A DNA stretch of 64,000 nucleotides, taken from the sequence record NC_048047.1; one strand, written 5' to 3'. The notes under the pieces were generated by a model, which worked only from the letters and a program-made list of their open reading frames with translations, ran no database searches and was not told the origin of the DNA. Shown here in pieces: positions 3,491 through 52,803 of this stretch; the stretch's first letter is position 1, and each line of letters starts with the position of its first letter. The position numbers were made by a program, and so were the translations under genes.

Positions 3491-3634
3491 AAGGACGCGC
3501 CCAGGCCTCCCCGGCCTGGGCGTTGCCCATTCACCAGGCGTTAAGGTTAACCGCGAAATTAGTGCGAGAAATCTGTTGACACGCATTGAGGCCCTATGCG
3601 AGAACAAAGCTCCACTTCATGAGGAGCGCCAAGC

Positions 3635-4291
3635 ATGGCCCTGCCCGATCGCCTCTTTGTTTCCACCGACGGCGCGCTTTACGACACGGCCGCAGAGGAC
3701 TGGAGCCGCCGCGCGCCCGTGCGCCGCCGCTACAATATCCTGACCAGCGAGGTCACCGATATGCAGGACGTCAAGGCCGCCCTGCGCCATGGCCCCTACG
3801 CCTTCCCCGGCGGCTATCCGCACTATTTCGTCACCCGCGACGGCGTGGCCCTGTCCTTCGACAGCGTGCGCAAGATGCTCTATCAGGTCGCGGACGATTT
3901 TCAGCATGACGCCTCGACCGGCTGGCGCATCGCCGCCATCGTCCCCAATTTCGAAGACGACGATCTCGTCTGCGACCACAGCGGCGAGAAAATCCCCTCG
4001 GCCTATGGCGCGGGCGATGAGTCGCAAGACGATGACGCCCCCATGGCCTGGGCGGTCGGCGCCAACGTCTCGGGCTTCATGCCCGACAGCGAGCCGGTGC
4101 ATTATGCCGATTGGACCGACGCGCGGCGCGGCCTGATCGACCTAATCGGACAAGCCCGCGAGGCCTACGAGGAAGACTCCGCCGAGGACGCAGCTTTCCA
4201 GACCATGCTGGACGCCTTGCGCGCCGTGCCCGATGAGGCTGAGTTCAATTGGGGCGCGGTCGGCTATCGCTGGTGGCTTGAGCGCCTGTAA
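3635..4291 (+). CDS. Early hypothetical protein with YAFPGGYP motif
   Basis: Promoter at 3576, SD GAGGAG, terminator-like hairpin after the stop. Confidence 0.8.
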   Translation: MALPDRLFVSTDGALYDTAAEDWSRRAPVRRRYNILTSEVTDMQDVKAALRHGPYAFPGGYPHYFVTRDGVALSFDSVRKMLYQVADDFQHDASTGWRIAAIVPNFEDDDLVCDHSGEKIPSAYGAGDESQDDDAPMAWAVGANVSGFMPDSEPVHYADWTDARRGLIDLIGQAREAYEEDSAEDAAFQTMLDALRAVPDEAEFNWGAVGYRWWLERL

Positions 4292-4443
4292 CCGCGAGCC
4301 CAGGCCTTCGCGCCTGGGCTTTGCCCCGCCCCCTGGGCGTTAAGGTTACCCGCGAAAATAGTGCAAGAAACCTGTTGACTCGCTTTGCCGCCCATGCGAG
4401 AACAGGGCTCAGACGAAACGACGAGACCACAAAGGAGGCCGCC

Positions 4444-4452
4444 ATGAAGTAG
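4444..4452 (+). CDS. Putative Met-Lys minigene (ATG AAG TAG)
   Basis: Strong SD AAAGGAGG at 4431-4438, 5 nt before the ATG, in the leader of the promoter-4375 transcript. Confidence 0.45.
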   Translation: MK

Positions 4453-4473
4453 CGACAATCTGGAGCACATCTC

Positions 4474-4947
4474 ATGGAAATCTACGTTGGCCTGCGTGAC
4501 GATCTGGTTCAGGTCGGGACTCATTGGGAGGACGGGGAACCGGAGTTTGCCCGTGTCATCACGGTCTATCTCCAGGCGCCTGACGGCTCCCGGATCATCC
4601 ACGATTACCGGTTCACCACGCGCGGCCCCCAAACCCAGGATGGGGATGGGATGCCATGTTGGCCACAACTCGATATCGAGGCTGTCGTCACCGAGGCGCA
4701 AGCCTTCCGCGACAAGGTGGAAGCCCATCTCAAGGCTGGTGGCCGCATCAAGCGCGAGCATTGGCGCGAGATCGATCCGGCCTACGGGTCCAGGGCCTAT
4801 GCCGATCTCGACCAGTTCGGCTATTGGCGCGCCATCGAACGTCAAGGCTGGCGCGACCATGGCGAGAACGTTCCGCCCGATCAGTGGGACGCCATCGCCG
4901 GTTTTGCCGAACCCAACGGCTGGCCCTTGCCAGACCTCTTTGCCTGA
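4474..4947 (+). CDS. Early hypothetical protein
   Basis: SD GGAG; followed by the terminator at 4952-4980. Confidence 0.8.
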   Translation: MEIYVGLRDDLVQVGTHWEDGEPEFARVITVYLQAPDGSRIIHDYRFTTRGPQTQDGDGMPCWPQLDIEAVVTEAQAFRDKVEAHLKAGGRIKREHWREIDPAYGSRAYADLDQFGYWRAIERQGWRDHGENVPPDQWDAIAGFAEPNGWPLPDLFA

Positions 4948-4951
4948 TCCC

Positions 4952-4980
4952 AAGGCCCGCCTCCCCGGCGGGCCTTTTCT
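4952..4980 (+). terminator. Intrinsic terminator AAGGCCCGCC-loop-GGCGGGCCTTTT, representative of a family closing early cassettes
   Basis: Similar hairpins plus T-tracts at about 8774-8811, 10884-10911, 13513-13539, 16822-16860, 19238-19264, 20685-20713, 21726-21755 and 22623-22649. Confidence 0.85.
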
Positions 4981-5133
4981 TGACCACCGCCTGGGGTTAA
5001 CCTTAACGTCGCCTTAAGGTTAACCCGCCCAGGCCGGCGCCCAGGCGAAAAAGATTGCGAGAAACCTGTTGACACGCATGGAAGCCCTATGCGAGAACAG
5101 GGCACCAATTCAACGCCAGCCGGGAGACACCCC

Positions 5134-8100
5134 ATGGCCCTTGTCACCGAGTCCTTTGTCGTCGATATCGACTGCACCCGCGCCCTGACTGCCGCCGAGC
5201 GGCGAGGACTGGCCGGCGCCATCGCCCAGGTCCTGGGCGTCAATATTGATCGTGTCGAGCCCGAACCGGGCGGTTTCCTGACCGCCAATATCGGCCGCGT
5301 GCGCCCGGCCGGCATGGTCGGCGCCTCAGGTCAAGAGGCTCGGATCAAGACCGAGGCCCTGACCAGCCGCGACCATGACGCGCCCGTCGCCCTGACCCTG
5401 GAGGCTGGCGAGCGCGTCGATGTCATCGCCCGCTTCTACTGCATGGCCGATGCTGAGACCTATCTGAACGAAAACCCCGACATCGACCCGGTGTCGCTGA
5501 ACCTGGGCTGCTATGGCATTGACGCGCCGTTTGGCGTGGCCAGCGACGCGGACGGCGACAAGCTCCTCTATGAGCTGGGCTATCGCCTGCACGCCACGGG
5601 CGGCGGGTCGTGGTCCTTCACCGATCCGAAGGGCTATCTCTGGGACGGCGGCGGCAAGCGTGAGGCCGTGGTCATGATCGCCCTGAAACAAGCCGCCGAC
5701 GCCGAGGAGGCCTAAGACCATGACCGGTTACACGATCAAGCTCGAAGTTCAGGTCAACCCGGCTGACAGCCTGGAGCAGGCGCGCAAGGACGTCGAGACC
5801 GCCATTATCAAGGCCGATCTTCCGGCCTGGATGGAATGGATGATCATCGACGCCGCGCCCCTGGCGCCGGTGATCGCGCCGGCCACGCGCTGGGCGACCT
5901 TCGTCGGTCAGGCCTGGATCAACGGCCACACGATGGAAGTGGACGACAGCCGCGTGAGCTACGGTGTCACTGACGAGGAGTTTGACGAAAACGGCGGGGA
6001 CGAGCCGGCCGACTTCGACGCCCTGGCCCAGGCCGCCCGCGCTCCCGACTGGGTGCGCAACTGGTCAGGCCCCTTCGACATCTACATCTCGGACATTCCA
6101 GACGGGCAGGACCCGGATATTCCGGTTTTCGGCTAAGGGTGCAAGAAAGCTGTTGACAGCATAACAGCCCTATGCGAGAAAGGGTCATAGCAAGGAGACA
6201 CCGCTATGACCCCCAACCCGACCGAAGAGGGCAAGGCCGCCGCCCGCCAATGGCTGGCCAACTCGACCAGCGAATGGGCGCCCGAGCCCAAGAACCCCTA
6301 TCGCACCCTGGCCCGGTCGATGACCGCCCGCACCGACGAGGAACGCCGCTGGGACGCGGGCTATCAGCACATCCTCGACCTGGAATTCCCCGACGACGGC
6401 GCCGAGCAGCGCGCCGAACGCGCCTTTGGCTGCTAGAGAGGTCCGCCGGCTCACCCCGGCGGACTTTCCACCACCGCCCGGCGTTAACCTTAACGCCGCC
6501 TTAAGGTTACCCGCGAAAATAGTGCAAGAAAGCTGTTGACAGCATAGAGGCCCTATGCGAGAAAGGCTCATCGAAACGGGAGACACCCCATGGACGACAC
6601 CTATCCGCCCCTGACCCCCGGCCAGCAGGACGCCCTGGTCGCCTTCGCTGACCAGCATGGCGGCCTGGGCGAGGCCTGGAAGGAAGCCCTCGGCGACGCC
6701 TGGAGGACGTGCAGCGAGCCCGAGGCGCTCAAGGCCGACCTGCGGACCATCCGCAACACCTATGGCCCCTCCTGGCTCTATGATGAATACGCCTGGGGCT
6801 GGCGCCCGACCCTGCCGGCCTGGGAGCGCGCCGGGCGCTGGACCGACACCCCGCCCGAGCCGACGCCGGGCAAGGCCCGCTGGAGCGCCGCCTTCGACCC
6901 GCCGGCCATCGGCGAGCGCGTCCGGGTGACCACCAACGGCCTGGGCTGGGCCAAGGTCACCGGCTACTTCGTCGAAGGCGACTGGCTGGGCGTGATCGTC
7001 AAGCTGGAGGCCCCGGCCGACTGGTATGTCAAACAGAACGGCGGCAACGTCCCCGGCCACAGCTTCGGGACCGAGATCGCCCTGACCGACCCCGCGTGAC
7101 CTGGGCGGCCCTGGCTGGGAGACCAGCCGGGGCGACGCCTTGGCCGGCGCGGTTAACCTTAAGGCCGCGTTAAGGTTAACCGCCCGCGCCCTCCGCCCGG
7201 CGAAAGAAAATGCAAGAAAGCTGTTGACACGCATCCGAGACCTATGCGAGAAAGGCGCATCGAACAACGGAGGCCCTTCCATGGCCAAGCTTTTCAGCGA
7301 TCTCCAAGACCTTGCCACCTCGACCTATGTCGTGCGCATCGTCGACAATGGCGGCGAGAGCGCCGACCGTTACACGATCGTCACCGCCGATGGCGACTAT
7401 TACGCCTACAGCGCCAATCCCTCCCATCCCCAAGGCGTGGGCCTGAGCGGCGAGGGCATCGACCCGCAAGTTCTGGCCGACTGGGTAGAGCGCGGGCAGG
7501 CCATCGACCTGACCATCGGCGAACTACCCGAGGGCGCCGCCCGCTGCCTGCTGGCGTCGATCAACGCCAGCGTCGAGGACTTCCTGGCCGCTGTCCTGGA
7601 CCCGACGTCCAACGCCGTGGCCCCGACCCGCGAAAAGGCGGAGATCAACGAGGGCGTCATGGATTGCTTCGGCAAGGGCATCTATCGTGTCGGCGAGGGT
7701 TTCGCCGTGCGTATGGATGGCATGGACGCGGGCGATGATCGCGGACCGTTCATGACCGCTGTCGATGCGGTCAAGGCCACCCTCCCCGATGAATACGCCT
7801 GGGCGGGCGAGGAATACCTGTCGCCGCGCGACATGACCAAGGTCACGCCCGAAGCCAAGCCGCTCGTCTTGGTTCACGCCCTGGAGGCCATTCGCGACTA
7901 TGAATATCAGCGCGACACACCCGGCGCGTTTTTCGACGGCCTGCACAAGGACGACACTGACGCGGGCCTGGGCATCGTGCGCCGCACGCGCTACCTGTCC
8001 AAGGTCACCGGTGATGCGACCATCGTCGGGCTGATCGGCGAGGCGCCGGCTTTCGCCCTGGCCCATGCGTGCCTCGACCAACTGTGGACCCTGGCGCAAG

Positions 8101-8754
8101 AGCGTTGGGAGGCGGGCCAGTGAGCGCCCGCGAACGCCGCGCCCTCGCCGAACTGCTGGCCCTCTTCCATGCCGTCAATAGCGGCCATGTCAAGGGCCGC
8201 AACCCCTACGCCTTCCCGGCCGTCAAGCTCGCCAACGCGGCGTTGACGGGCGATCCGCTGGACGGGGGATTCCACGTCGCCGAAGCGCTGGACACCCTGC
8301 GCACGTCCGATGGCAAGGCGCTGCTATTCGACACCGAATTTCCCGAAGAAAGCGGTTGACAGCATAAGGGGCCTATGCGAGAAAGGGTCATCAACGGAGA
8401 CACCCCGCCCATGTGGACCGACAAGACGTTCAAGACCCGGACCGCCAAGGAGGCCTGGATCGCCCGCAACGAAGACCGCTATCAGATCGTCGAGATCGTG
8501 GTCTGCAACGCTTACGGCGTGTCCTACAAGCCCCTGCGACGCGTCTACTAGGAGACCCGCCCATGATCCCCGACTCGGTCCGCAACCCCAAGGACCACTG
8601 GACCCCCATCGCCACCCGCGCCGAGGCGGACGCCCTGGCCTTCCGCTACAACCAAGACGACGACGGCCCCGGCCTCTACGAGGTCCACGAAAAGGGCGCG
8701 ACCTTCGCCATCGCCTACTATGACGAAGACGGCGTGTTCTGCGCCTACGTCTAG
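5134..8754 (+). other. Run of early hypothetical genes
   Basis: CDSs at 5134-5715, 5720-6136, 6206-6436, 6590-7099, 7281-8123, 8120-8359, 8411-8551 (46 aa, hand-translated) and 8563-8754. Each has an SD and/or a promoter, and the CDSs tile tightly. Confidence 0.75.
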
Positions 8755-8943
8755 CCGTCACCTCGTCACCTTGAAGGCCGGCGCCGCTCTCCTGGCGCCG
8801 GCCTTTTCTTTGCGCCCGGCCGCCCGGTTAATCTTAAGGCGGCGTTAAGGTTAACCCGCCGCATCCCGCCCTGATGCAAAAAACCTGTTGACACGCATGG
8901 AAGCCCTATGCGAGAAAGACGACGAACACGGGAGACACCCCTT

Positions 8944-9948
8944 ATGACCACCGCCACCATCGCCGGCGCCGAACACACGATGATCGGACAAGCCGCCTAC
9001 CGCTCCACCCAGCGCCCGCATCAAGTGCAGGACATGGCCTATGGCGCGTTCCCGGCCGCCACGTCGGACTCGCCCTTCGCCGTCAAGCCTGCCTGCGGCA
9101 AGACCCCGAGCGCGCGCGTGCTGGAGGACTTCGACCCCGCCGACGTCTTCACCATCAAGCCGCGTGATCGCGGCGACGGCTTCCTTGCGGTCGCCAACTT
9201 CGGCGGCTCTGAGGTGTCGTGGATCAGCGTCGCCGGCTATGGCGACACCGAAGACGCCGCGCGCGCCAACCTCATGGCCAAGTTCATCGACGATCGCGAC
9301 GGCAAGAGCAAGTTTGGCCCCCATGAGCCGCTCAAGGGCTATGACTGGTCCTATAAGCTGGCGCCCTATTGGGACATGCTGGAGCGCGAGGCCGCCATTC
9401 GCCAGCCCTTCAAGCGCACGCTCTACCTGGGCAAGCTGAAGTCGGGCCGCCCCAATCCCAAGGGCTTTGACGTGTTCGTCGATGTCGAATGGACCGGCGA
9501 GCGCCTGAGTCTGTCGGGCGTCATCGGCCCCAAGGCCAATGGCAACGCCTGGGGCGGCTGTGGTCAGATCGTCGGCAGTCTTGCGCGCAAGGACTTTCTG
9601 GAGTTCGCCCCGTCCTGGCATTATGGCTCGGCCCTTGACGGTCTGGTCAAGGCCTGGACCCGCTGGCACCTGAACGACATGCGCGCCGGCACGCCTCGCC
9701 AGCAAGAACACCTGCGAGGCTATCAGGCCAAGCGCAACATTGAGCAGGCCAAGGCCGCCGGCGCCCACCATCTCGACGCCACCCGCGCCGAACTGGCGCG
9801 CGTCCATCTGGAGCCCGACACCTGGGAGCGCCGCAACGGCCGGCCCTATAGCTACGGCTCCGCATGGTTGCGCGAGGAGGTCCCCACCTTCGTTCTCGAC
9901 TTCCTGCGCAATCTCCCCGCCCCCGTCAAAACCAGCCCCTGGAGGTAA
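8944..9948 (+). CDS. Early hypothetical protein, 334 aa
   Basis: Promoter at 8888, SD GGAGA, ATG 8944. Confidence 0.8.
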   Translation: MTTATIAGAEHTMIGQAAYRSTQRPHQVQDMAYGAFPAATSDSPFAVKPACGKTPSARVLEDFDPADVFTIKPRDRGDGFLAVANFGGSEVSWISVAGYGDTEDAARANLMAKFIDDRDGKSKFGPHEPLKGYDWSYKLAPYWDMLEREAAIRQPFKRTLYLGKLKSGRPNPKGFDVFVDVEWTGERLSLSGVIGPKANGNAWGGCGQIVGSLARKDFLEFAPSWHYGSALDGLVKAWTRWHLNDMRAGTPRQQEHLRGYQAKRNIEQAKAAGAHHLDATRAELARVHLEPDTWERRNGRPYSYGSAWLREEVPTFVLDFLRNLPAPVKTSPWR

Positions 9949-9955
9949 CCCGCCC

Positions 9956-10390
9956 ATGGCCATCAACACCGCCGGCCTCGTCGGCAAGCTCAAGGAAGCC
10001 CTGGCCAGCGCGCCGAACCTGACCCTTTGGGCCAAGGAACGCGGCCTCTTCCACCAGAACGTTTCGGCCGCCGCGCGCGGCGACACCGTGCCGCAAGACA
10101 GCATCGCCAAGGCCCTGGGCTATCGGCGCGTCCACGTCCAAGCCTATCTGGCGCCCGGCGAGGCCCTGCCGCTTCTGCCGCCCGGCTGGGAGGAAGTGGT
10201 TCCGGGCTCGGCGACCCCGGTCGACTGGAAGCCGCGCGACAAGACCGCCGAGCCGGCTCATCGCCGCGTTGGCTCGCCTGAGCAAATGGCGCGCGCCCGC
10301 TCGCTTCGCCGGCAGGAAGACCCCGAGGCCGTGGCGGCGGTGCAGGAAGCCCTTGCCGACGCCAAGGCCAAGCTGCGAAAAACCGGTTGA
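9956..10390 (+). CDS. Cro/XRE-like helix-turn-helix DNA-binding protein
   Basis: SD GGAGG. The N-terminus NLTLWAKERGLFHQNVSAAARGDTVPQDSIAKALGY fits the small phage Cro-like HTH pattern. Confidence 0.55.
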   Translation: MAINTAGLVGKLKEALASAPNLTLWAKERGLFHQNVSAAARGDTVPQDSIAKALGYRRVHVQAYLAPGEALPLLPPGWEEVVPGSATPVDWKPRDKTAEPAHRRVGSPEQMARARSLRRQEDPEAVAAVQEALADAKAKLRKTG

Positions 10391-10441
10391 CAGCATAAGG
10401 CGGCTATGCGAGAAAGGCTCATCACTTTCTGGAGCAAGCCC

Positions 10442-12988
10442 ATGGCCGCCTTCCTGATCAACACCGATCTCAACGCCCTGGTCGAGGACATCGCCTATGA
10501 CGTCGAGATGGAAGACCGCGCCGCCGAGGAACTCGATGGCATGGACTTTGGCGACCGCTGCTATTACGGCGACCGCGCCTATCATGGCCAGCTTGAGCTT
10601 GCCCGGATCATCGAAGCGGCCACCGCCGCCCATCCCATCCTGTACGCCTAGCAGAGGAGGCGCCGCTTGACCCGTTACCGCACCGACTACAGCCAAGACG
10701 ACGGCAAGACCGTCATTATCGAGGAAGGCCTGACCCGGACCGAGGCCATGCAAAAGGCCGCGATCCTGTCGCGCAAGCACGGGACCGCCTACGCCGTCGC
10801 CTCCGACGACAAGGGCCGCGACACTGGCCAAAGGGTCTATGCTGACGGCCGGTTCAGCTACCAAGACGACAAGTTCTAAGGCAAGAGGCCCGGAGCGATC
10901 CGGGCCTCTTGTCTGTCCCGAGCCGCCCGTTAACCTTAACCCCCTGGGACGGGGCGTTAACCGAACAATCTGCAAGAAACCTGTTGACACGCATCTGAGG
11001 CCTATGCGAGAAAGGCTCATCGAACAACGGAGGACGTCATGTCCAAAACGTCTATTGATCCTGTGATCGCCCAAGCCCTCGCCGAACTGCGCCAAGGCCC
11101 GGTCATGGTCGATCATGGCCCCCAAGACCGCACCCAAGTCGTGAGCTTCGGCGCGACCCAAGCCCGGATGGCCAATGTCGCCCTCACGATCGAACAAGCC
11201 CTGTCGCAAAGCCCCGCGCCCTACGCCCTGGGCTGGTTGCTGGTCACTGAATATGACCGCCTGGGCGACAATTGGGGTGGCTTTCTGGGCGGCCCTCTCG
11301 ATGAGGGGCAAACCCTCAAGGACGCTGACGAGGTGCTGGCGTGGTTCCGCGCCACCTTCCCCGAGGACCCGGAAGGCTTTGCCGGGCAGATGGCCGGCGC
11401 CCTGCCCAATGACGAGACCCGCGCCAAGATCGAAGCCGGCTACGCCGAGGCCCTGGCCATCAAGGACACGGTCGCGCCCCTGGCCAATATCGGTTCGGCC
11501 GAGGCGGTCGCCGACATGATGTCCACCATGTTCGGCTCTGCTGTCAACGCTGCTCAGGCCCTGGGCTATCTCGTCACCACCCTGGGCGCGGGCCGCTTCG
11601 GCGTCACCCATGACGACGGCGCCACCCTGGCCACGCGCCTGGAAATCGACCACCCGACCCAAGAGGCCGCCGCCCGCGCCGCCCTGGTCTACCATGTCCA
11701 GCACCTGCAAGCCGACACCCTGGCGCTGGCCAATCTGAAGGACTGACCATGACCGCCGCCGCCTCTCTCTTCGAACAAGCCCAGATCGAAGCCGCGCAAG
11801 CCGCGATCGATCTCAACACCGCCAAGGTCGGGCTGGAAACCGAGGACTCCAGCCCTGGAACCGACCTCTTCCACCTGCTGGGCTCGCTGCTGACCTGGGC
11901 GGACGCCTGGGGCGTGGACTTCGACGACATCCTGTCTCAGGTCCGCGAGCCGGTGAACGTCACCACGACCCTGACCCGCAATGATCCGGCGACCTATGGC
12001 CAAGATCAGCGGTTCGCCGCCATCCTGGCCAATCTCGACCAGCGCAATACCCCTTCCGTGCCGGTCCTGACCCGTGATGAGGCCGAAACCGAGGCCATGC
12101 GCGATCTCGCCGCCGTGGTCGGCAAGGTGATCAAGGTCCACGACATCACCGGCTATTTCGGCGAGACGGGCCAAGAGGACTTGCGCCCCCATGAAGGCGC
12201 GCCGGCCTTTTCGGTGATCGTCCTGCCGTCTGAGCGCGGCGATGTCATCCACTGGAATGACGAGCATCTGGACGTGCGCTGGAACGTCACCCCCGCGCCG
12301 GGCGAAACCCGCCTCTATGAACTGCGCTCGCTGTGGGTGTTTGGGCGCGGCTACGTCGTCGAGAAGGAGGGCTAAGGCATGGCCATGCCCCTGGGCTTGC
12401 GGACCACCGCCACGAGCTACGCCATCGACGTGGATGATGACCAGTTCCTGGCCATGATCCAGGCCGAGAGCTACAAGGGCGGCGACTTCGAACCGACCCT
12501 GTTCGACAAGCTGCAAAAGACCGACGCCCGCGACATCGAGTATAACGGCCACTTCGGCGCGTCCGTCTATTTCACCCTCAACGAGGAGGACGACACGCCC
12601 GCCCTCCGCGCCGAACTCGCCCGGCTGATCGCCGAACACCTCACCCTCTGTGTCGCCCACATGGCGACCTACGACAAGGACGCGCCCGATGCTGACTGAG
12701 GCCTCCATTCGTCTCGCCCCGTCCGACCTGCAAACGACCTTCGTCGTGGTCGGCAAGGTGCATCTGCATTTCTTCCTGACCACCCTGGTGGGCTTTCGCT
12801 GTCCGCGCCTGGGCGCGGTGCGCAACCCCGAGGGCCACAACGCCGGCGCCCGCGCCAAGGCCCATCTCCAGGCCCTGGGCTACTACGCCGAGGGCACGGG
12901 TAAAACCGCCACCGAAGAAGACTTTCAGCGCCTCGCCATGGCCGCGCTCGCCGGCTCCAGTGGTCCTGACTATCTCCTGTTGAGATAA
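10442..12988 (+). other. Run of early hypothetical genes
   Basis: CDSs at 10442-10651, 10667-10879, 11039-11746, 11749-12375, 12379-12699 and 12689-12988; promoters at 10387 and 10984. Confidence 0.75.
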
Positions 12989-13104
12989 GACCGCCTCCCA
13001 CGTCTAGGGCTGTCACGAATCCCCCCATCTATGACAGCCCAGACGCCCGTTTAGTCTTCCCTGTACTCTATTGCGCCAGTATCGGCGCGGAAAGTGATGC
13101 GCCT

Positions 13105-13167
13105 ATGAAGCTCCTCGAAGGTGGCGGACTGCTGGCCCTGTGCTTCCTTTTCTGGCTCCTCCACTGA
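13105..13167 (+). CDS. 20-aa hydrophobic micropeptide MKLLEGGGLLALCFLFWLLH, copy 1
   Basis: The identical peptide is encoded at 16757-16819 despite 12 nucleotide differences, none of which changes the peptide. Confidence 0.8.
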   Translation: MKLLEGGGLLALCFLFWLLH

Positions 13168-13231
13168 CAAGGCTGTTGACAGCATAAAGGCACTATGCGA
13201 AAAGGGGTCATCGCCACCGGAGACACCCGCG

Positions 13232-13498
13232 ATGACCGAATATGACGACTACGGCCAAGACGCCTATTTCGACCACCTCCACGATCAGGCCGTCGATGAG
13301 GCTTTCGAGCGCCACGCCGACGACGCCTATGAGGACGACCTAGGCGACGAGGACCCCGACCTCGAAATCCCCGATGAGGAAGACGAGGAGGAGGGCCTTC
13401 GCCGGGCCGAAGGGCTCATGCCCTGGGCGACCCCCGAAGGCGTCGAGCCTGGGCAGTTCCCGCGCCGGGCCTATGACGACGACGAAATCCCGTTCTGA
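13232..13498 (+). CDS. Highly acidic 88-aa protein ending in an SSB-tail-like YDDDEIPF
   Basis: Promoter at 13176, SD GGAGA; 33 of 88 residues are D/E. Confidence 0.8.
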   Translation: MTEYDDYGQDAYFDHLHDQAVDEAFERHADDAYEDDLGDEDPDLEIPDEEDEEEGLRRAEGLMPWATPEGVEPGQFPRRAYDDDEIPF

Positions 13499-13704
13499 TC
13501 TCCTCCCTTCGAAAGGCCCCGCGCGGGCCTTTCTTTTTGCCCCGCGCCTGGGGTTAACCTTAAGGCGGCGTTAAGGTTAACCCGGACCATTTTTCGTCTT
13601 TTGTGTCGGGCCATTTTTCGCTTTTCGTGTCGAGGTGCAAGAAAGCTGTTGACAGCATAAAAGCCCTATGCGAGAAAGGCTCATCGCAACCAAGGAGCCC
13701 GACC

Positions 13705-15467
13705 ATGGGTCTCAAGATCGAAATCGACACCGGCAACGACGCCTTTCAGGGTGTGGCCGGCGAGCACTGCGCCAGCCTCCTGCATGAGGTGGCCCGCAAG
13801 CTCGACCAAGGCGCCCGCGCCGGCAATATCTACGACGGCAACGGCAACAAGGTCGGGACCTACGAACTCGACCACACCGACGCCCCGGAGTCGTAAGCCA
13901 TGGCCTATTTCGACGTCATCACCACGGTGCGCGTTGAGGTCGAGGACATCCCCGATCTCTTCGCCGCCGCCCTGGCGCGCGCGGTCAAGGACGGCATGGA
14001 AGAGGGCGACGCCCGCGACCTGCTGACCAACTCCGACCCCCTGGGCCGCCCCGACATCAAGTCGTGCCTGATCATGCTGTTTGATCCGGGCGTGAGCCCG
14101 GACGGCACGTCGATCAGCGGCACGGAAGTCCAGCGCCCCGACATGGACGAAGACGACGCCATGGACGCCTACGAGGACGCCCACGGCGAAGACGAGGAAG
14201 GCGACGGCGATGACGAGGACTAAGGGCAAGTCGCGCGTTCCCCAACGCCTGCTGATCGCCAGTCGGCCGACCCTGGTCGCCGGCCCCTCGCCAGCCACCC
14301 GCCGCCACTGGTGGGACCTTCTGGACAGCGCGGGCCACCCGCGCGACCTTGAGGCCCTGCTGGTCGTCACCATCGACCAAGACGCGGCCGAAACCGTCGT
14401 CGCGGTCCTGCCGCTCGCCGCCGCCGACTACAGCGAAGAAGCCGTCAAGGCTGACGCCCTGGTCGCCGCCCACACCCGCCCCCGCAGCCCTGGCAAGCGC
14501 GACGCGCTCAACGCCTATGTGCTGCATGTCAATGACCCCCATGCGGAGCATCAACCGTGAGCTATTCCGGCCCGATCACCATTTCGCAAGGCCTGCGCTG
14601 GCGCCTCGATAGCTACGGCAACGGCGCGGCCTATGCCTTCTATGACCTGTCGGCCGGCGCCAGCGTCTGGCTTGAAGGCGACGACGCCACCACGTTCCGC
14701 GACGACTACGACAACGCCGAAAAGCGCCGGCCGCAAGACGAGCCTGACGAGATTATGGGCCATCTGTGGCATGATCACGAATACGGCGCCGCCGCCAAGG
14801 TCCGGGCCGTCACCGTGCGCCGGATCATCCGCGAAGACACCGTGATCCTGTTGCGCCCCGGCGAGAGCGAGGCCGACGCCAAGGAACGGGCGATCTTCAA
14901 TCAATCCTCGCTCAAGTGGGACACCTACGATTGCGAGTATAGCGCCGACGCCGCCGAGGACGCCCCCGCCGAGGAATACGCCTATCTGCTGACCGGCCAC
15001 CCCTGCGCCATCTAAGCCAAGGCCCGCCCCTCCCTTCAGGCAAGGAAGGCGGCGGGCCTTGCCCTGGGCGATCGCGGTTAACCTTAACGTGCAAGAAATC
15101 TGTTGACACGCATTGAGGCCATATGCGAGAAAGGACCACCGCAACGGGAGAGACCCCCATGACTGCCCAAGCCGTTCTGACCGCCCGCCTTGACCGCGCC
15201 GTCGCCGTGATCTCTGGCGACATCCCCAAGAGCCGGCGCAAGGTGCGCAAGGCCCGCCGCGCCTTCCAGCGCGCCCTGGAAGGGATGGACATCCCGACCT
15301 ATGTGGCGTGGATCAACCACCCCGACTCGTTCATCGCCCTCACCGACGATGTCGAGCACTGGGCGCAAAGCGGGATCACCACCGCCGCCCAACTGGGCGC
15401 CTATCTCGACGGCTGCGCCCGCCATGAGGCCCGCAAGGACTTGATGAGCGGCTACCTCGACGACTAG
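13705..15467 (+). other. Run of early hypothetical genes
   Basis: CDSs at 13705-13896, 13900-14223 (acidic C-terminus), 14210-14560, 14557-15015 and 15159-15467. Confidence 0.7.
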
Positions 15468-15561
15468 GCGGCAAAAAGGCCCGTCCCCTGGTGGGGCGGG
15501 CCTTGTCCTGTCCGATCGGGATTAACCTTAACGCGAGATTAAGGTTAACGCAGCCTTAAGG

Positions 15562-15804
15562 TTAAGTGGCGTTCTTGCGCGTCGTGGCCTGGGGATTGGC
15601 CTTCAACCATGCGTCGGCTTCCGTCCGGGTCGAGAACGGCGCCCCGCCAATGCCCTGCGTCCCGTCGTCCCATTGGATGGTCCAACCCACGTTCTTGATT
15701 TCCCAATCTTCGGCCACGCCGTGGGGGATCGGGGCGTGTACGCCAATACGGGTAAACGGCGCCCGCTTCAGTTGACGGACACGCGCCGGGATCACTTGCG
15801 GCAT
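15562..15804 (-). CDS. Hypothetical protein, 80 aa; the only inverted gene in the early array
   Basis: Minus-strand SD AGGA; minus-strand TTTCTTGACAC at 15879-15889; the stop codon lies inside the TTAA palindrome arm. Confidence 0.6.
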   Translation of the reverse strand: MPQVIPARVRQLKRAPFTRIGVHAPIPHGVAEDWEIKNVGWTIQWDDGTQGIGGAPFSTRTEADAWLKANPQATTRKNAT

Positions 15805-15985
15805 TTCAGGGATTTCCTATTGACAAAGGCCTTGCCCCATGGGCGGCCCGAAAGGCGACTGTATCAAGCGGCGCCGCCGTGTCAAGAAACGCGACACAGA
15901 CTGAGAAAGCGGTTGACACGCATCTAAGCCCTATGCGAGAAAGATCAGGCACGGCGCACCCCCGCGCCCCTGGGAGACACCCCGC

Positions 15986-16756
15986 ATGGACCTGACCACG
16001 TTTTCGGCCTCGGCTGAATTTGTTCTCTGCAACAAGCCGGTGAAGATCACCGTCAAGCCCGCCGGCCGACCGCTCTACCTGTCGTTTTCCATCGAACAGA
16101 TCGGCATGATCGGCGGTAGCGACGAATTGATGAGCGAGGCCGAACAACACGACGTTGAGGACTTGGTGACGGTCTTGACCATCGCCGACGTCCTGTCCCT
16201 CAAGCCCATCGAGACCTATAACGACGAAGACCGCGACGCCGTCGAGAGCGTGCGCTATGCGCTGATCATGCTCAACGGCGAGCGCTACGCTTCGGCCGTC
16301 GCGTTCGAGGATGTCGGCGAGGCCGATTTTTCCAATCGCGACGACACCATTGACACCCGCCAAATCGTCGAGCGGGTCGAGGTGCTTCGGAGCGCCCTGG
16401 AGACGGCCGGCGTCGAGACCGGCGACCTCGCCGCCCTGGAAGCCCTCGACGAAGAAGAGGCCGTGACGGACCAAGACCAGCGCGAGACCTTCAACGAGAT
16501 TCGCGAGGAATATCTGATCCTGGCGCGCATGGTCGAGGAGGGCGCCAACTACGGCGAGGATTGGACGTTCGGCGCCACCCTGGTCCGCGAATCCTACTTC
16601 ACCGAGTTCGCGCAAGAAGAGTGCGAAAGCCTGGGCTACATCGCCAAGGACTTCCCGTCGTGGATTTCCATCGACTGGGAAAAGACCGCCAACACGATGA
16701 AATCCGACTATACCGAAATCGACTTTGACGGCGTGAGCTACTACGTTCGCGCCTAG
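15986..16756 (+). CDS. Acidic ArdA-like antirestriction (DNA mimic) protein
   Basis: The C-terminus FTEFAQEECESLGYI...ISIDWEKTANTMKSDYTEIDFDGVSYY matches the ArdA C-terminal pattern; the protein is very acidic. Confidence 0.6.
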   Translation: MDLTTFSASAEFVLCNKPVKITVKPAGRPLYLSFSIEQIGMIGGSDELMSEAEQHDVEDLVTVLTIADVLSLKPIETYNDEDRDAVESVRYALIMLNGERYASAVAFEDVGEADFSNRDDTIDTRQIVERVEVLRSALETAGVETGDLAALEALDEEEAVTDQDQRETFNEIREEYLILARMVEEGANYGEDWTFGATLVRESYFTEFAQEECESLGYIAKDFPSWISIDWEKTANTMKSDYTEIDFDGVSYYVRA

Positions 16757-16819
16757 GTGAAGCTCCTCGAAGGCGGCGGCCTGCTCGCGCTCTGCTTCCT
16801 CTTCTGGTTGCTTCATTAA
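16757..16819 (+). CDS. 20-aa hydrophobic micropeptide, copy 2 (GTG start)
   Basis: Abuts the TAG of the ArdA-like gene in frame; same peptide as 13105-13167. Confidence 0.75.
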   Translation: MKLLEGGGLLALCFLFWLLH

Positions 16820-17131
16820 CCCCGGCCGGCGTCCATGACCTGGGCGCCGGCCTTTTCTTTGCGCCGCGATCGGGGTTAACCTTAAGGCGGCGTTAAGGTT
16901 AACGGCGGGCCTGGGAGGAAAGGCGTCAAGGCCGCGAGCTAGGATTACACGCGATGGCTTAGCCGGCGTCCAGCCGGCGGCGCCTTCGACCACCGCGAGG
17001 CGGCCTTGACCCTCGTAATCTCGCCGACCCGTCGCCCGGTGTCAACCGTTTTCTTTCTCCAAGAATTCTGTTGACACGCATCGAAGCCCTATGCGAGAAA
17101 GGGTCATCTTCAACGCCTGGAAAGAAAATCC

Positions 17132-17788
17132 ATGCCCCGCACCGTCACCAAACAGGTCTTCACGTTCAAGGAGTTGAACGACAAGGCCAAGGCCAAGGCT
17201 ATCGAGTGGTATCGCGGCCTCAACGACCAAGACTCCGGTTGGTGGGAGTTCGTCTATGACGAAGCCGACCGCATCGCCGACGCCTTCGGGATCACCCTGC
17301 GCCGCAAGGAAGCCGGCAAGCCCAATAGCGGCCCGGACATCATGTTCACCGGCTTCTGGAGTCAAGGCGACGGCGCCTGTTTCCAAGGTCGCTACGAGTC
17401 GCCCCAAACCCCGGCCGTCGAAGCCTTCGCCGCCCTGGGAATCGAAGACGACACGCTCAAGGCTCTGGCCGCCCGTCTGGACGCTCTGAGCGCCAAGGTT
17501 CGCCTGATCACCACGGTCAAGCACTCTGGCCACTACTACCACGAGTATTGCACCGACTTCGAAACCGAACGCATGGTTCCCGACGAAGCCGGCGACGCCT
17601 TCGACCCTTACGACTTCGAGCACGAAGACGAAAAGGAACTGATCGACATTCTGCGCACCTTCATGAAGTGGATTTATCGCCAGCTTGAAGTCGTCGAGGA
17701 AGACCGCAATTCCGACGAAACGATCAGCGAATATCTGACCGACTCTGATTACGAGTTCGAGGCGGACGGCTCGCCGACCAACGACTAA
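17132..17788 (+). CDS. Conserved acidic early phage protein (VFTFKELNDKAKAKAIEWY...GFWSQGDGACF family)
   Basis: Promoter at 17071. I recognise this as a recurring phage hypothetical family; function unknown. Confidence 0.8.
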   Translation: MPRTVTKQVFTFKELNDKAKAKAIEWYRGLNDQDSGWWEFVYDEADRIADAFGITLRRKEAGKPNSGPDIMFTGFWSQGDGACFQGRYESPQTPAVEAFAALGIEDDTLKALAARLDALSAKVRLITTVKHSGHYYHEYCTDFETERMVPDEAGDAFDPYDFEHEDEKELIDILRTFMKWIYRQLEVVEEDRNSDETISEYLTDSDYEFEADGSPTND

Positions 17789-17960
17789 GCCAAGCCCGCC
17801 GCGCCCGGCCTTTTCGCCGGGCGCGTGTCGGGTTTTGGTTTTCCAAGGTCTTGTTAAGGTTAACGAAAAAAGCCCTCCAGCGACCTGAGAAACTGCAAGA
17901 AAAATGTTGACTGCATCCAAGCCCTATGCGAGAAAGGCTCATCGCAACGGGAGACACCCC

Positions 17961-19832
17961 ATGACGACCCCGACCAAGAAGCGCCGCAAGCGCTACCCGC
18001 CCAAGAGCGACGCGGCTAAGGCTCGCGCCGCCGCCAAGAGCAAGGCGTTCTTCGCCAAGCACGCGCTCAAGGCCACCGAGGCCACGATCGCCGCCATGAA
18101 GGCCGGCGACCAAAAGGCCGTCCAACGCCACGCCAAGGACGCCCGGCGCCTGAACCGCTGGATGATCCACAAGCGCGACATCGCCGCCGCCTTCGCGGCC
18201 CTTTTCGACCTGCGCGCCGCGCGCCTCGCCCTGGAGCTTGCCGCATGACCCGTCGCCCTGCCTATCTGACCGTCCTGGGCGGTATCGGCCTCATCCTCGC
18301 CAGCCTCGCGCTTTCGGCCGCCAGCGCCCCGGAAAAGCGGGTTCTCGTGGGTCAATACTGCGACGGCGACCTTGTGCGCCTCTACGGCCTGGAAGACGGC
18401 GAGGAAGCGGCCGAGGCCTGCGCCATCGTCGAAGTCCACGCCCTGCCCAAGGGCCTTTGACCATGGAACGCCTCAACGTTCACGTGCTGACCATCACCTA
18501 TGACAGCGGCAACCCCGTCCCGCCGTTTGTCGCTCTGGCCATGTCCAAGGAGGAGCTTGACGACAACCTGCAAGCCAAGGCGCGCGAGGAAGTCGAAAAC
18601 CTCTATTTCGAGGAAGACGACCTCTTTGACGACCTCGCCAAGGTCCTGACCGCCGAACGCGTCGCCGAGCTTCAGCCCCTGGGCCTGGACGCCATCGGCC
18701 TCCTGACCCCGGTCGAAGTCGTCACCATGGCCAAGCAATTTGCGTCGATCACGCCAAGCTTTGACGTGCTTCCGCTCTACCTCGAATCGACCCCGACCTG
18801 ACGCAAGAAAGCTGTTGACAGCATAATTCGCCTATGCGAGAAATGACTGTCAACGGCGATTCCCGCCGCATGGAGACACCCATGAAGCTGATCAAACACG
18901 ACGTTCTCGACCACGGCCGCGCCTCGACCCTGCGCAACGCCCTGGGCACGGCCCTGGAACGATACGCCGAAATCGCCAAGGACTTCGAAGGCTACGCCAT
19001 CGAATACGCGGCCCTGGACGAGGCGGGCAAGCAAGCCTGGAAGGCCACCAATAGCTGGATCAATCCGCGCGCCCTGCCGGACCTGAAAAAGCAATTCGAG
19101 CGCCAAGTCACCGAGGTGCAAGACCTCATCGACTGGCTGGACGGCGACAAATTCCAAGACGAAAACGGTCAATACCCGGAAAACACCGAGTTCACCGTCG
19201 TCGCCGGCCTGATCCGCGACTTCTAAACGCCCTGGCCAAGGCCCGCCCTCACGGCGGGCCTTTTCCTTGACCCCGCGCCGCTGTTAACCTTAACGTGCAA
19301 ACGTTCGCCGATTAACCTTAACGAGACATGTCCGTTCCGTTAACCCTGTCGTGCAAAAAAGCTGTTGACTCGCATCCAAGCCCTATGCGAGAAAAGGCCA
19401 TCAGCAACGGGAATGACCCCCATGACCAAACCCGAAATGACCCCGGAAGAACGTCGAGCCCAGCTTGACGACATGCTCAAAATCTGGCGCGAGCGCGTCG
19501 AGACCGCCAAGCAACGCCTGTCGATCAACGTCCTGGTCGGCCGAGGCTTCCTCTGCGTCCTGGAGCGCGAGCCCAGCGGCATGGCCATCGGCCCGACCGA
19601 GGATGACAAGGGCTGGCGCCTTGTGGCCATGAACCCCTGGTTCACCGGCTGCGTCAAATGGGCCAAGGCCGACGCCGAACAAGTCGCCGCGCACTGGAAC
19701 GCCAACCTCACCGGCGACGCGGCCCTCTACTGCGTGGTCAAGGTCATGCACTATCGCGCCGTCCTCGAAGAGATGGTCACCAAAGGCGAGGAGATGATCG
19801 CCTTCATGGAAGACCGCTATAAGGCCGCCTGA
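17961..19832 (+). other. Run of early hypothetical genes
   Basis: CDSs at 17961-18248 (basic), 18245-18460 (signal/TM N-terminus), 18463-18801, 18882-19226 and 19422-19832. Confidence 0.75.
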
Positions 19833-20020
19833 TCTTGACGCCCTCCGGCTCCGGCCGGAGGGTTAATTTTTGGTCGACCCGGCGTCAAGGTTAACGCGCT
19901 CCAGCCTGGGGTTAACCTTAACCCGCAACCGTTTGCACGTTAACCATTTGGCGCAAGAAACCTGTTGACACGCATTTCTGTCCTATGCGAAAAGAGGCCA
20001 TCCAATCAACGGAGGCCCGC

Positions 20021-20677
20021 ATGGCCAGCCCTGAAGATATCGCCATCGTCCAAGCCGCGCCGGTCAGTTTCGACCTCGAAGCGTGGGAGGAAGAAAACGG
20101 CCAATATGCCCAAGACCACTGGCGCCACCTCAACTACGCCTTTGAGATCAAGGGCTATAAGCACATGTTCACGCAAGATCAGCGCGCCGCCGCCGATCGC
20201 CTGATCGCCGAATATGAGGAAGCCCAAGACGACCACCGCGAAACCTACCGCGCCGAAAGCGACGCCGTTTTCTGGGCGGCCGACGCCTTCGCTCGCCAGT
20301 ACATCGGCACGGCGCTCTGGACGGGCGTTAGCTACCCCATGGGCGATGATCGCGGCGGAAGCGACAGCTACTATGACGGCGAATCGGCCTGGATCACGCC
20401 CAAGACCCTGCGCGAGATGATCGAAGATTGCGACGCCTTCCAGCGCGACAACGTCGCCGCCCTGGCCAAGGCCTATGCGTCTGACGTCTGGATCGAAGGC
20501 GAGCGCTACAACGCCAGCAACGCCGGTCACGATTTTTGGTTGACCCGCAACGGTCACGGCGTCGGCTTTTGGGATCGTGGCCTAGGCGAGGTCGGCGAGA
20601 CCCTTTCCGAAGCCGCCCGCAAGGTCGGAGAATACAGCCTAGCCCTTGACGACAACGGCGAAATCAGCCGCATGTAA
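20021..20677 (+). CDS. Conserved early phage protein with AGHDFWLTRNGHGVGFWDR motif
   Basis: Promoter at 19965, SD GGAGG; a recognisable recurring phage motif of unknown function. Confidence 0.8.
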   Translation: MASPEDIAIVQAAPVSFDLEAWEEENGQYAQDHWRHLNYAFEIKGYKHMFTQDQRAAADRLIAEYEEAQDDHRETYRAESDAVFWAADAFARQYIGTALWTGVSYPMGDDRGGSDSYYDGESAWITPKTLREMIEDCDAFQRDNVAALAKAYASDVWIEGERYNASNAGHDFWLTRNGHGVGFWDRGLGEVGETLSEAARKVGEYSLALDDNGEISRM

Positions 20678-20839
20678 CCCCGGCAAAGGCCCGCTTGACA
20701 GCGGGCCTTTTTCGTGCCTGCGCCTGGGGTTAACCTTAACGCCACCCCGCTCCGCCTTAACGCTCTTTTCTGCAAGAAAACAGTTGACTCGCATCCGCGC
20801 CCCATGCGAGAAAAGGTCATCAACCACGGAGCGCGGCAC

Positions 20840-22589
20840 ATGGCCAAGCAAGAACAACTTGAAATCGCCCTGGTCCTGCTGGACGAGCACAAGGCCAAGA
20901 TCGGCGCCCCTCGCGCCTTCACCTACGGCGAAGTCATCGAGGCGTACCGCGACGCGGGCGCCCTGATCAGCGCCGAGGTCCGCTTGCAGCGGATCGCCGA
21001 AAACGAGTGCAACGGCTACCGCGACGAGACGGCCGAAAAGCTCGATGAGCGCCGCCGTCAGACCCTCGAAGCCAAGGCCGGCGAAATCGCCAAGCGCTAC
21101 GGCGTGGCCCTGACGTTCGGCGGCGACCCGCGCGGATCGGCCCTCAAGATCAAGACCCCGCACACGGGCCGTTACAACGGCTTTGGCGGGCGTGAGGATG
21201 GATGGGCCGTCTAGGCCCATTCTGACCCCTTCCACCCCTGTAGCGCGTCCCCTCTCAACCCCTGGCCCTAGGAGACACCCCATGGCCCGCACGACCATCC
21301 ACACCCGCACCGACAAGGCCAATCGCGAGGCGCTGACCCCGTGGGAATATGAGCGCCAGCACCGCGCCGACAAGAAAGCCGCCAAGTCCTGGCGCACCGA
21401 TCGCCAAGGCCGCCGCGCCCTGGCCTCTTCGGACGCCTTCAAGGCCCACTAAATCGGCCTCGAAAAAAGTTCGGCTCGATGCGAGAAACCTGTTGACTCG
21501 CATCGAGCCCCTATGCCATAAAGGGTCATCAAACGGAGACACCGACATGACCCACTTCCAACGCGCCACCGAAGACCAAGTCACCGTCGCCCACCACACC
21601 GTTTCGGGCGGTGAACTGACCGTCACCACCCGCCCCCTGGCCCGCCCGGTCTACCGCCTGAACGGCTTCAAGATCAGCGCCGCCGACGCCGCCCGCAAGC
21701 TGGCCGCCTAAGACCCCTCCCCTAGAAGGCCCCCTCCCTGGAGCGGGGCCTTTTTCGTGGCCGTTAGGCAGGCGTTAGGGTTAACCGGTAGGGTGAATTC
21801 GTTAACCTTAATGGGGCGTTAAGGTTAACCCAGCCAGCCCAGGCTGTTAACCATGTAGGCGAAGAAAGTGCGATCTCGTGTAAGAAAGCTGTTGACTGCA
21901 TAAGAGCCATATGCGACAAAGGGTCATCAGCAACGGAGCTACCCGATGTCCTTCCGCCTTTCCCTCACTGACGAAGCCCGTTTCACCGCCGCGCGCGGCG
22001 CCGTTCGCACCGTCCGGGAACAGGCCCGCCCTGAGCCGGCCAAGGACGGTTCGGGCAAGTACGTCCTGGCCTCGCAAGACGCCCTGTCGCGCATCCGCGC
22101 CGTGCTGGGCAACTAAGCCATGAAGGTCACGGCGCACTATGGCAACGGGCTCTCGCGGGTCATCCCCTGCGAGACGCGAGAGGCCGCCCTGGACGCGATC
22201 AAGGCCGCGTTGCGCTATGATCGCTCGGCGACCTTCACGGTTGACAAGCGGATCACCCAAGGCGCGCCGACCCGCGCGGCCTCCGAACGGGTTTGGCTGC
22301 TGTAGAAGAAAAAAGCGAGTCGACGCAAAAAAGCTGTTGACTCGCATAAGGCCCATATGCGATAAAAGGTCCTCAGCAACGGAGACACCCGATGACCTTC
22401 CACCACAACATGATGAGCAAGCTGGACGCGGCCCAACAGTCGGGCGAACTGTCCTATGCCCAGCACGCCGACATGCGCGCCACCCTGCGCGCGGCGAACA
22501 TGCGCGGTGAAGTGTTCACGTCGATGAACGAACTGCGCAAGGCCTGCAAGGGCGCTGGCCGCGACTATCAAGGCCGCTTCGCCAACTAA
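20840..22589 (+). other. Last run of small early genes
   Basis: CDSs at 20840-21214 (GDPRG motif), 21282-21452, 21547-21711, 21946-22116 (56 aa, hand-translated), 22120-22305 and 22392-22589. Confidence 0.75.
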
Positions 22590-52344: not shown

Positions 52345-52803
52345 ATGTGCCGTTGGTGCGGCGCTGTCATCCTCCGGGCCGACGGCACCGTCAACAAGCG
52401 CAAGCAGTTCTGTGACCGCCACTGCGTCCACGAGTTCCTGCTGAGGACCGATCCGACCCGCTGGCGCAAGAACACCTACAAGGAGTCGATGGGCATCTGC
52501 CATCGGTGCAGCGAGGTCTTCGACTACTACGAAGATGATGGATGGGAGGCCGATCACATCGTGCCGCTCTACCACGCCCACCGGATCGGGGACTGGACCG
52601 CCTGGGACCCCGAGAACCTCCAGCTTCTCTGCATCCCCTGCCACAAGGACAAGACGCAGGAAGACTACGCCACCTACGGCCGGCCCTGGCTGGGTGAAAG
52701 CCCCGACGTCCTGCCCGACAGCGACGAGCCGCACCCCGAGGACCTGCCTGACTTCGGCGAAGAAGACGAAATCGACTTCGATGCCGATGAAATCCCATTC
52801 TAA
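52345..52803 (+). CDS. HNH endonuclease with an acidic tail ending DFDADEIPF
   Basis: CRWCG...FCDRHC, CHRC...WEADHIVPL...NLQLLCIPCHKDKT. The start is uncertain (frame open from 52111). Confidence 0.8.
   Translation: MCRWCGAVILRADGTVNKRKQFCDRHCVHEFLLRTDPTRWRKNTYKESMGICHRCSEVFDYYEDDGWEADHIVPLYHAHRIGDWTAWDPENLQLLCIPCHKDKTQEDYATYGRPWLGESPDVLPDSDEPHPEDLPDFGEEDEIDFDADEIPF

Follow-up and report, generated by a model that had tools for sequence, protein, structure and literature searches.

The SSB tail, an antibacterial target, is the central hub through which bacteria recruit enzymes of replication restart, recombination and repair. In phage T7, gp2.5 and gp4 share acidic C-terminal tails, ended by Phe, for the T7 DNA polymerase. 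The phage DNA mimics Ocr and ArdA are small, early and extremely acidic proteins, the rigid folded scaffolds of which imitate duplex DNA. Mimicry of short linear motifs is well known in eukaryotic viruses and, to our knowledge, little documented in phages. Small molecules that block docking on the SSB tail were found to stop replication and recombination, and to kill bacteria (Marceau et al. 2013, PMC3594151). Our full-text literature searches for a natural mimic or decoy of the SSB tail gave, within the papers covered, synthetic mimics only.

The gene considered here, CcrBL9_gp023 (gp023 hereafter), is annotated as coding for a hypothetical protein. It belongs to Caulobacter phage CcrBL9 (MH588546, 322,272 bp, genus Bertelyvirus), the host of which is C. 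vibrioides CB15, and lies in the first 64 kb of the phage genome, i.e. the whole stretch of 64,000 nucleotides that was analysed and that we call the window. By megablast, bases 11000-17000 of the window match this genome with 100% identity and at identical coordinates. The gene is located within the annotated 22,260-bp direct terminal repeat, and an identical second copy is found at 313244-313507 of the genome. The features of the locus, in window coordinates, are the following:

13176..13200, plus strand: promoter-like motif TTGACAGC...CTATGCGA, part of the gp023 single-gene unit
13219..13222, plus strand: ribosome-binding site GGAG, 9 nt 5′ of the ATG, kept in the alignment
13232..13498, plus strand: coding sequence of gp023, 88 amino acids
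13232..13396, plus strand: residues 1-55, variable and extremely acidic; transient helices are possible at residues 5-35 and 49-60, the latter reaching beyond this part
13397..13474, plus strand: residues 56-81, Pro/Gly-rich linker with LRRxEGxMPW, invariant in three Bertelyvirus lineages
13475..13495, plus strand: residues 82-88, DDDEIPF, mimic of the SSB C-terminal tip, the last six residues being those of the host SSB
13511..13540, plus strand: intrinsic terminator, a 9-bp stem followed by a T run, 3′ of the gp023 stop codon

The protein contains 18 Asp and 15 Glu (33 acidic residues), no Lys and 5 Arg, which amounts to a net charge of about -28, and its C-terminus, YDDDEIPF, is followed directly by the stop codon. 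A longer frame, started by a GTG at 13121, was rejected: it is not conserved and spans the promoter, and the 88-amino-acid reading is the correct one.

Like the SSB tail (DDDIPF in E. coli, DLDDEIPF in C. crescentus), the gp023 C-terminus presents a free-carboxylate ...D-D-E-I-P-F after a flexible stretch containing Pro and Gly; unlike a bacterial SSB, gp023 has no OB fold or detectable ssDNA-binding domain, shows no homology beyond the tip, and is a separate phage orphan of 88 amino acids. The likeness with T7 is that several proteins of one phage carry one kind of acidic, Phe-ended tail, in CcrBL9 a putative docking peptide, and CcrBL9 also has a family A polymerase; the difference is that the T7 tails belong to working replication proteins and are directed at the phage polymerase, whereas gp023 is domain-free and its tip copies that of the host SSB. 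With Ocr and ArdA, gp023 shares small size, extreme acidity, a likely early expression and a proposed molecular mimicry, but disorder is predicted for it, and what is conserved in it is a peptide motif, not an array of charges. As for the inhibitors of Marceau et al. (PMC3594151), the action proposed below is the same, i.e. occupation of the tip pockets of many partners at once; these inhibitors are synthetic, whereas the competitor would, with gp023, be a peptide of natural origin, encoded by a gene.

The C-terminus of the host SSB could be read directly from a published primer, AB_oligo_659 (PMC8102061, supplementary file 12), with which the C. crescentus "full length ssb" was amplified in order to fuse YFP to the C-terminus. 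Beyond the KpnI site, the reverse complement of this primer is GAT CTG GAC GAC GAG ATC CCG TTC, i.e. D-L-D-D-E-I-P-F, and the forward ssb primer encodes MAGSVNK, the usual start of an alphaproteobacterial SSB. Since the reverse primer served to amplify the full-length gene, the C. crescentus SSB must end in DLDDEIPF. The LDDEIPF tip is present in 5795 of 18,841 alphaproteobacterial assemblies (PMC13490951). The last six residues of gp023 (YDDDEIPF) are identical to those of the host reference tip; the seventh residue from the end is Asp in gp023 versus Leu in the host protein. The variant with Asp is nevertheless a genuine natural SSB tip, because most of the bacterial ORFs ending in DDDEIPF-stop, at least 120 in number, possess a canonical SSB N-terminus (MAGSVNKVIL... 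or MASFNKVILLGNL...). That the gp023 tail copies an SSB tail, in other words the mimicry itself, is solid as far as sequence comparison goes.

The tip is rare in the genome and is found at the end of two other proteins. When the whole 322-kb genome was scanned in all six frames (4553 frames with a length of at least 40 amino acids), only three distinct ORFs proved to end in an acidic run followed by IPF: gp023, in its two copies, an ORF ending at 52803 with FDADEIPF and another one ending at 237582 with PLDDEIPF. We estimate that [DE][DE]IPF-stop should be matched by chance about 0.015 times per genome, against 4 matches observed in CcrBL9. At the DNA level, this pattern has no match in phiCbK, CcrRogue and CcrColossus, one in a Brevundimonas phage and three in BL47, and the reversed pattern, used as a control, gave no match in five related genomes. 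Judged by these counts, and by the fact that no orthologue departs from it, the gp023 tail is not a chance feature. The two additional ORFs correspond to:

52345..52803, plus strand: gp116, HNH endonuclease (Pfam HNH and PHROG HNH) with an acidic C-terminal extension ending FDADEIPF
237151-237582 of the genome (L006:5152-5583), outside the window: gp372, 143 amino acids, no family match, ending PLDDEIPF

Identity to the host tip extends over the last seven residues in gp372 and the last five in gp116. The acidic extension of gp116 and its FDADEIPF end are present in BL9, CcrSC and BL47, whereas the orthologues from phiCbK, Rogue, Colossus and Papperlapapp have basic tails devoid of IPF; to judge by this comparison, the extension is a gain of the Bertelyviruses only. 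The end of gp372 is PLDDEIPF in BL9 and CcrSC versus ...LEDHIPFE in BL47. Among the Caulobacter phages tested, the set of tips is specific to Bertelyviruses. In the phiCbK, Rogue, Colossus and Brevundimonas-phage relatives, a gene annotated as RNase H is located directly upstream of the gp116 orthologue.

SSB-type tips were also found well outside this genus. Brevundimonas phage Papperlapapp, a related jumbo phage, encodes a 112-amino-acid acidic protein, 01590, which ends in SFDDDIPF (L144:1504-1839, minus strand) and has a homologue in IMG/VR (L243:3862-4173; blastp 2e-21) ending in DVDDEIPF, for which our home-made OB-domain profile gave no match. Both are small and acidic with an SSB-type tip, like gp023, and otherwise dissimilar from it, the similarity between 01590 and gp023 being limited to the tip; by this comparison they form a second, independent family of small acidic tip-ended phage proteins. 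Among the 121 IMG/VR ORFs ending in DDEIPF-stop (loci L154-L273, e.g. L186:9453-11129 and L181:1936-3468), 23 match the same OB-domain profile; the others include an SF2 helicase, a primase of the archaeo-eukaryotic type (AEP), a protein similar to Pam3 gp34 and many proteins without family, some of which are probably non-canonical SSBs. The tip thus appears to have been grafted widely onto phage replication proteins. In bacteria, DDDEIPF is found at the end of non-SSB proteins as well, namely an exonuclease VII small subunit, a 3′-5′ exonuclease, a DUF4062 protein and a protein kinase (L050:7568-7876, L053:3870-5162, L031:3858-4862 and L057:77-931). Because it occurs on such diverse phage and bacterial non-SSB proteins, the tip can be regarded as a portable docking peptide. 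What sets gp023 apart is that no recognisable domain is attached to it.

The search for a domain or a fold in gp023 gave no Pfam match at E values up to 0.1 and no PHROG match, and no OB fold was detected. AlphaFold2, run on a three-sequence alignment, returned only helix and coil at low confidence (mean pLDDT 57.8, pTM 0.20), with helical propensity at residues 5-35 and 49-60 and coil for the last 28 residues; for the same sequence the ESM Atlas model has a pLDDT of 0.42 and a pTM of 0.15. The protein is thus predicted to be disordered, without a confident fold. The idea that it might be what is left of the 3′ end of an ssb gene was rejected, there being no similarity beyond the tip, and BLASTP of gp023 against the tail-matched bacterial proteins (at least 120) produced only alignments that were tip-length or compositional. 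As to the phage itself, CcrBL9 has no match to PF00436 (SSB), and neither has any of four related Dolichocephalovirinae genomes; PF10991 (Enc34-type ssDNA-binding) and PF08804 (gp32) have no match in CcrBL9 either, which is a weak result since the controls for both matched nowhere. From these searches CcrBL9 appears to be without a recognisable SSB. An earlier note, made from the letters of this DNA alone, had described gp023 as an OB-fold-less protein of 88 residues, 33 of them Asp or Glu, that ends, with YDDDEIPF, in an SSB tail. Translation of the ORF agrees with the length, the composition and the end, the lack of an OB fold stood up to the Pfam and PHROG searches, and the tail assignment is strengthened by the DLDDEIPF end of the host SSB and by the natural occurrence of DDDEIPF in many bacteria.

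Relatives of gp023 are few. With tblastn against 50,697 phage records, matches were obtained in the 11 Bertelyvirus records only; a word search retrieved relatives in CcrSC (90% identity), in the C1/BL47 group (82%) and in one Logan contig (L007); and an exhaustive search through 1.84 billion representatives with an HMMER profile returned the same Bertelyvirus-type relatives, plus one spurious low-complexity match. No relative was found in genome contigs and metagenome contigs, only CcrSC was found in viral contigs, and the ESM Atlas provided no usable lead. By these searches, gp023 would constitute an orphan family of Bertelyvirus-type phages. Within the family, conservation is very unevenly distributed: residues 56-88 are invariant across three Bertelyvirus lineages, and evolution is fastest in the acidic N-terminal half. 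When BL9 is compared with BL47, seven synonymous differences and no non-synonymous one are counted in the last 33 codons, versus four synonymous and seven non-synonymous differences in the 33 codons that precede (-66 to -34 from the C-terminus). This pattern indicates that the C-terminal third of gp023 is under purifying selection. In the divergent relative on the Logan contig, the called protein departs from gp023 after residue 56, owing to an extra G; in the other frame, one finds the MPW motif, a different linker and the end ...HGDDDEIPF-stop. Since both are kept in this relative, the LRRxEGxMPW motif and the tip are the two elements that survive divergence, and the invariance of the former suggests that gp023 may make a second contact through it. 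The extra G is located in a run of G at L007:4050-4070; it could stem from faulty assembly or represent a genuine frameshift.

The promoter-like motif ahead of gp023 is one of 22 near-identical copies, of the form TTGAC-N-GCAT...CTATGCGA, which are distributed over positions 3576-22362 of the window, each ahead of a small gene cassette. The series is repeated in the second copy of the terminal repeat (303588-321928 of the genome) and, outside the repeats, the motif has a single copy in the genome, at 286324. The gp023 copy is conserved in CcrSC, BL47 and L007. With its own promoter motif and terminator, gp023 is, on this arrangement, a single-gene cassette in a co-regulated class restricted to the terminal repeat, and the 22-member set looks like a dedicated class of early promoters. 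Early promoters of phiCbK are under CtrA control (PMC9437464). Taking together this CtrA dependence, the position of the motifs and their host-type promoter shape, we infer that the class is the earliest one and that early expression of gp023 is likely. The earlier note had already called gp023 early: the position in the terminal repeat and the 22-copy promoter class now support that claim indirectly. On the RNA side, no run with the locus was found, and wastewater and freshwater contigs gave short fragments only. In between the gp023 terminator and the gp024 promoter there is a palindrome, GGTTAACCTTAAGGCGGCGTTAAGGTTAACC (window 13553-13583), which contains a perfect TTAA-N7-TTAA CtrA box; similar sites are found near 4996, 7152, 15522, 16875 and 21801.

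What could such a protein do? Our tentative interpretation, to which we would give close to an even chance, is that gp023 amounts to the docking peptide of the host SSB on its own, mounted on a disordered acidic scaffold and encoded by a cassette of the earliest class, and that it uncouples host enzymes from SSB-coated DNA. The gene would be transcribed from its own strong cassette, present in two copies in the terminal repeat, along with the earliest class of phage genes; the free C-terminal ...DDEIPF would then insert into the hydrophobic/basic pockets that the genome-maintenance proteins of Caulobacter use on SSB, with RecQ (CC3465), RecO (CC1564), RecJ (CC1386) and RecG (CC1437) as candidate targets in the host. 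PriA and the chi subunit of the clamp loader are presumably further candidates. Because gp023, according to this proposal, cannot bind ssDNA, its occupancy of the pockets would uncouple the enzymes from SSB-coated DNA, and the outcome would be a dampening of host replication restart, recombination and repair during takeover. Caulobacter does have recQ, recO, recJ and recG, and is without ExoI and RecBCD (PMC1839093). The earlier note had likewise proposed a decoy, which would titrate or redirect host replication and repair enzymes. Such an effect is plausible since replication and recombination come to a halt, and bacteria are killed, when the same pockets are blocked chemically (PMC3594151). 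Both the binding of gp023 to any partner and the inhibitory outcome are things that we infer from the sequence. Several points speak against a pure decoy: the seventh residue from the end, Asp in place of the host's Leu, is one, and the second contact suggested by the invariant LRRxEGxMPW motif is another. A further one is stoichiometry: a monomeric peptide must reach a high concentration if it is to rival tetrameric SSB on DNA. Finally, the occurrence of the tip on gp116, on gp372 and on phage helicases and primases shows that phages often seem to use it to recruit and not to block; since gp116, gp372 and replication proteins of other phages carry the tip too, a recruiting role or a phage-encoded partner is conceivable. 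The role that we deem most likely from these comparisons is, in broader terms, that of a competitor or an adaptor at the host SSB-tail pockets (RecQ, RecO, RecJ, RecG, PriA).

The adaptor version, taken by itself, is rather unlikely. It supposes a second target, be it a protein of the phage or a DNA-binding protein of the host, which is bound by the acidic N-terminal part or by the LRRxEGxMPW linker; the tail would recruit to this target a host SSB-interacting enzyme, which is thereby redirected to the benefit of the phage. The invariance of the entire C-terminal third, beyond the tip alone, would be accounted for, as would the retention of MPW in the divergent L007 relative, and the presence of the tip elsewhere on helicases, primases and nucleases fits recruitment; but neither a second domain nor a fold is predicted in gp023, and its N-terminal part, one of the two proposed contacts, is precisely the least conserved region. 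We see as distinctly unlikely the possibility that the tail addresses a phage-encoded hub, i.e. that, much as with the T7 tails, gp023, gp116 and gp372 all dock on one protein of the phage replisome, which gp023 would regulate. Three CcrBL9 proteins have the tip in common, the phage has a family A polymerase (PolA) and a Dda/PIF1-like SF1 helicase that could be such a hub, no SSB family was detected in it, and, of the Caulobacter phages tested, only the Bertelyvirus lineage has this set of tips. Against this, the tip agrees with that of the host in six or seven residues, which is more than an acidic stretch with a terminal Phe would require, gp023 is placed among the cassette genes of the terminal repeat, far from the replication module, and the tip of the gp372 orthologue has decayed to ...HIPFE in BL47.

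A more generic explanation, which we find highly improbable, is that gp023 acts as a polyanionic mimic of nucleic acid or as an acidic chaperone, coating basic DNA-binding surfaces such as those of the host SSB OB fold, nucleoid proteins or nucleases, and that the tail is minor or incidental. Its net charge of about -28 and the aromatic residues scattered among the charges, as well as the acidity of the adjoining terminal-repeat genes, are in keeping with such a function; besides, SSB tips can fold back on the DNA-binding surface of SSB. Yet the acidic part is the one that evolves fastest, the tip and the linker being invariant, charge alone leaves the exact match to the host tip unexplained, and nothing like the rigid scaffold of known DNA mimics is predicted for gp023. 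Lastly, the proposal that the ORF is a chance reading frame, or its tail a coincidence, could draw only on the small size and low-complexity composition of the protein; it is effectively refuted by the exclusively synonymous change in the last 33 codons, by the existence of a promoter, a ribosome-binding site and a terminator proper to gp023, and by the number of tails, 4 where about 0.015 per genome are expected.

If gp023 is indeed a competitor for the SSB tail, it would be a naturally occurring competitor for the hub in its entirety, and an example of host takeover through the copying of a short linear motif. It would also provide a simple genetic means of turning off the docking of SSB partners in Caulobacter, as well as a probe to catalogue the SSB partners of an alphaproteobacterium. 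A wider scenario, doubtful in our eyes, would be that the SSB-less Bertelyviruses grafted the host tip onto three unrelated proteins in order to rewire the SSB hub, that gp023 is the first natural protein acting as a pan-inhibitor of SSB-partner docking, and that tail-only, OB-less proteins make up a recurrent and hitherto undescribed class of takeover factors; the word recurrent is justified by the second, unrelated family in Brevundimonas-type phages. That a phage nuclease, and helicases and primases from other phages, also bear the tip suggests that tail grafting may be a general, under-described design principle. The elements that are new here are the direct reading of the host tail, the tails of gp116 and gp372 with their lineage-specific gain, the class of promoters, the pattern of selection, the exhaustive search for homologues and the independent Brevundimonas-phage family.

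The surroundings of gp023 call for two additional remarks. Several terminal-repeat proteins are acidic and without family match, and the product of a neighbouring cassette gene, gp025 (window 13900-14223, plus strand), also has a strongly acidic C-terminus. Upstream of the gp023 promoter, an unannotated ORF of 20 codons (window 13105-13167, plus strand) specifies a hydrophobic peptide, MKLLEGGGLLALCFLFWLLH; CcrSC, BL47 and the Logan contig L007 all retain this ORF, BL47 and L007 differ in it by synonymous changes only, and, on the strength of this conservation, it is probably a real micro-gene.
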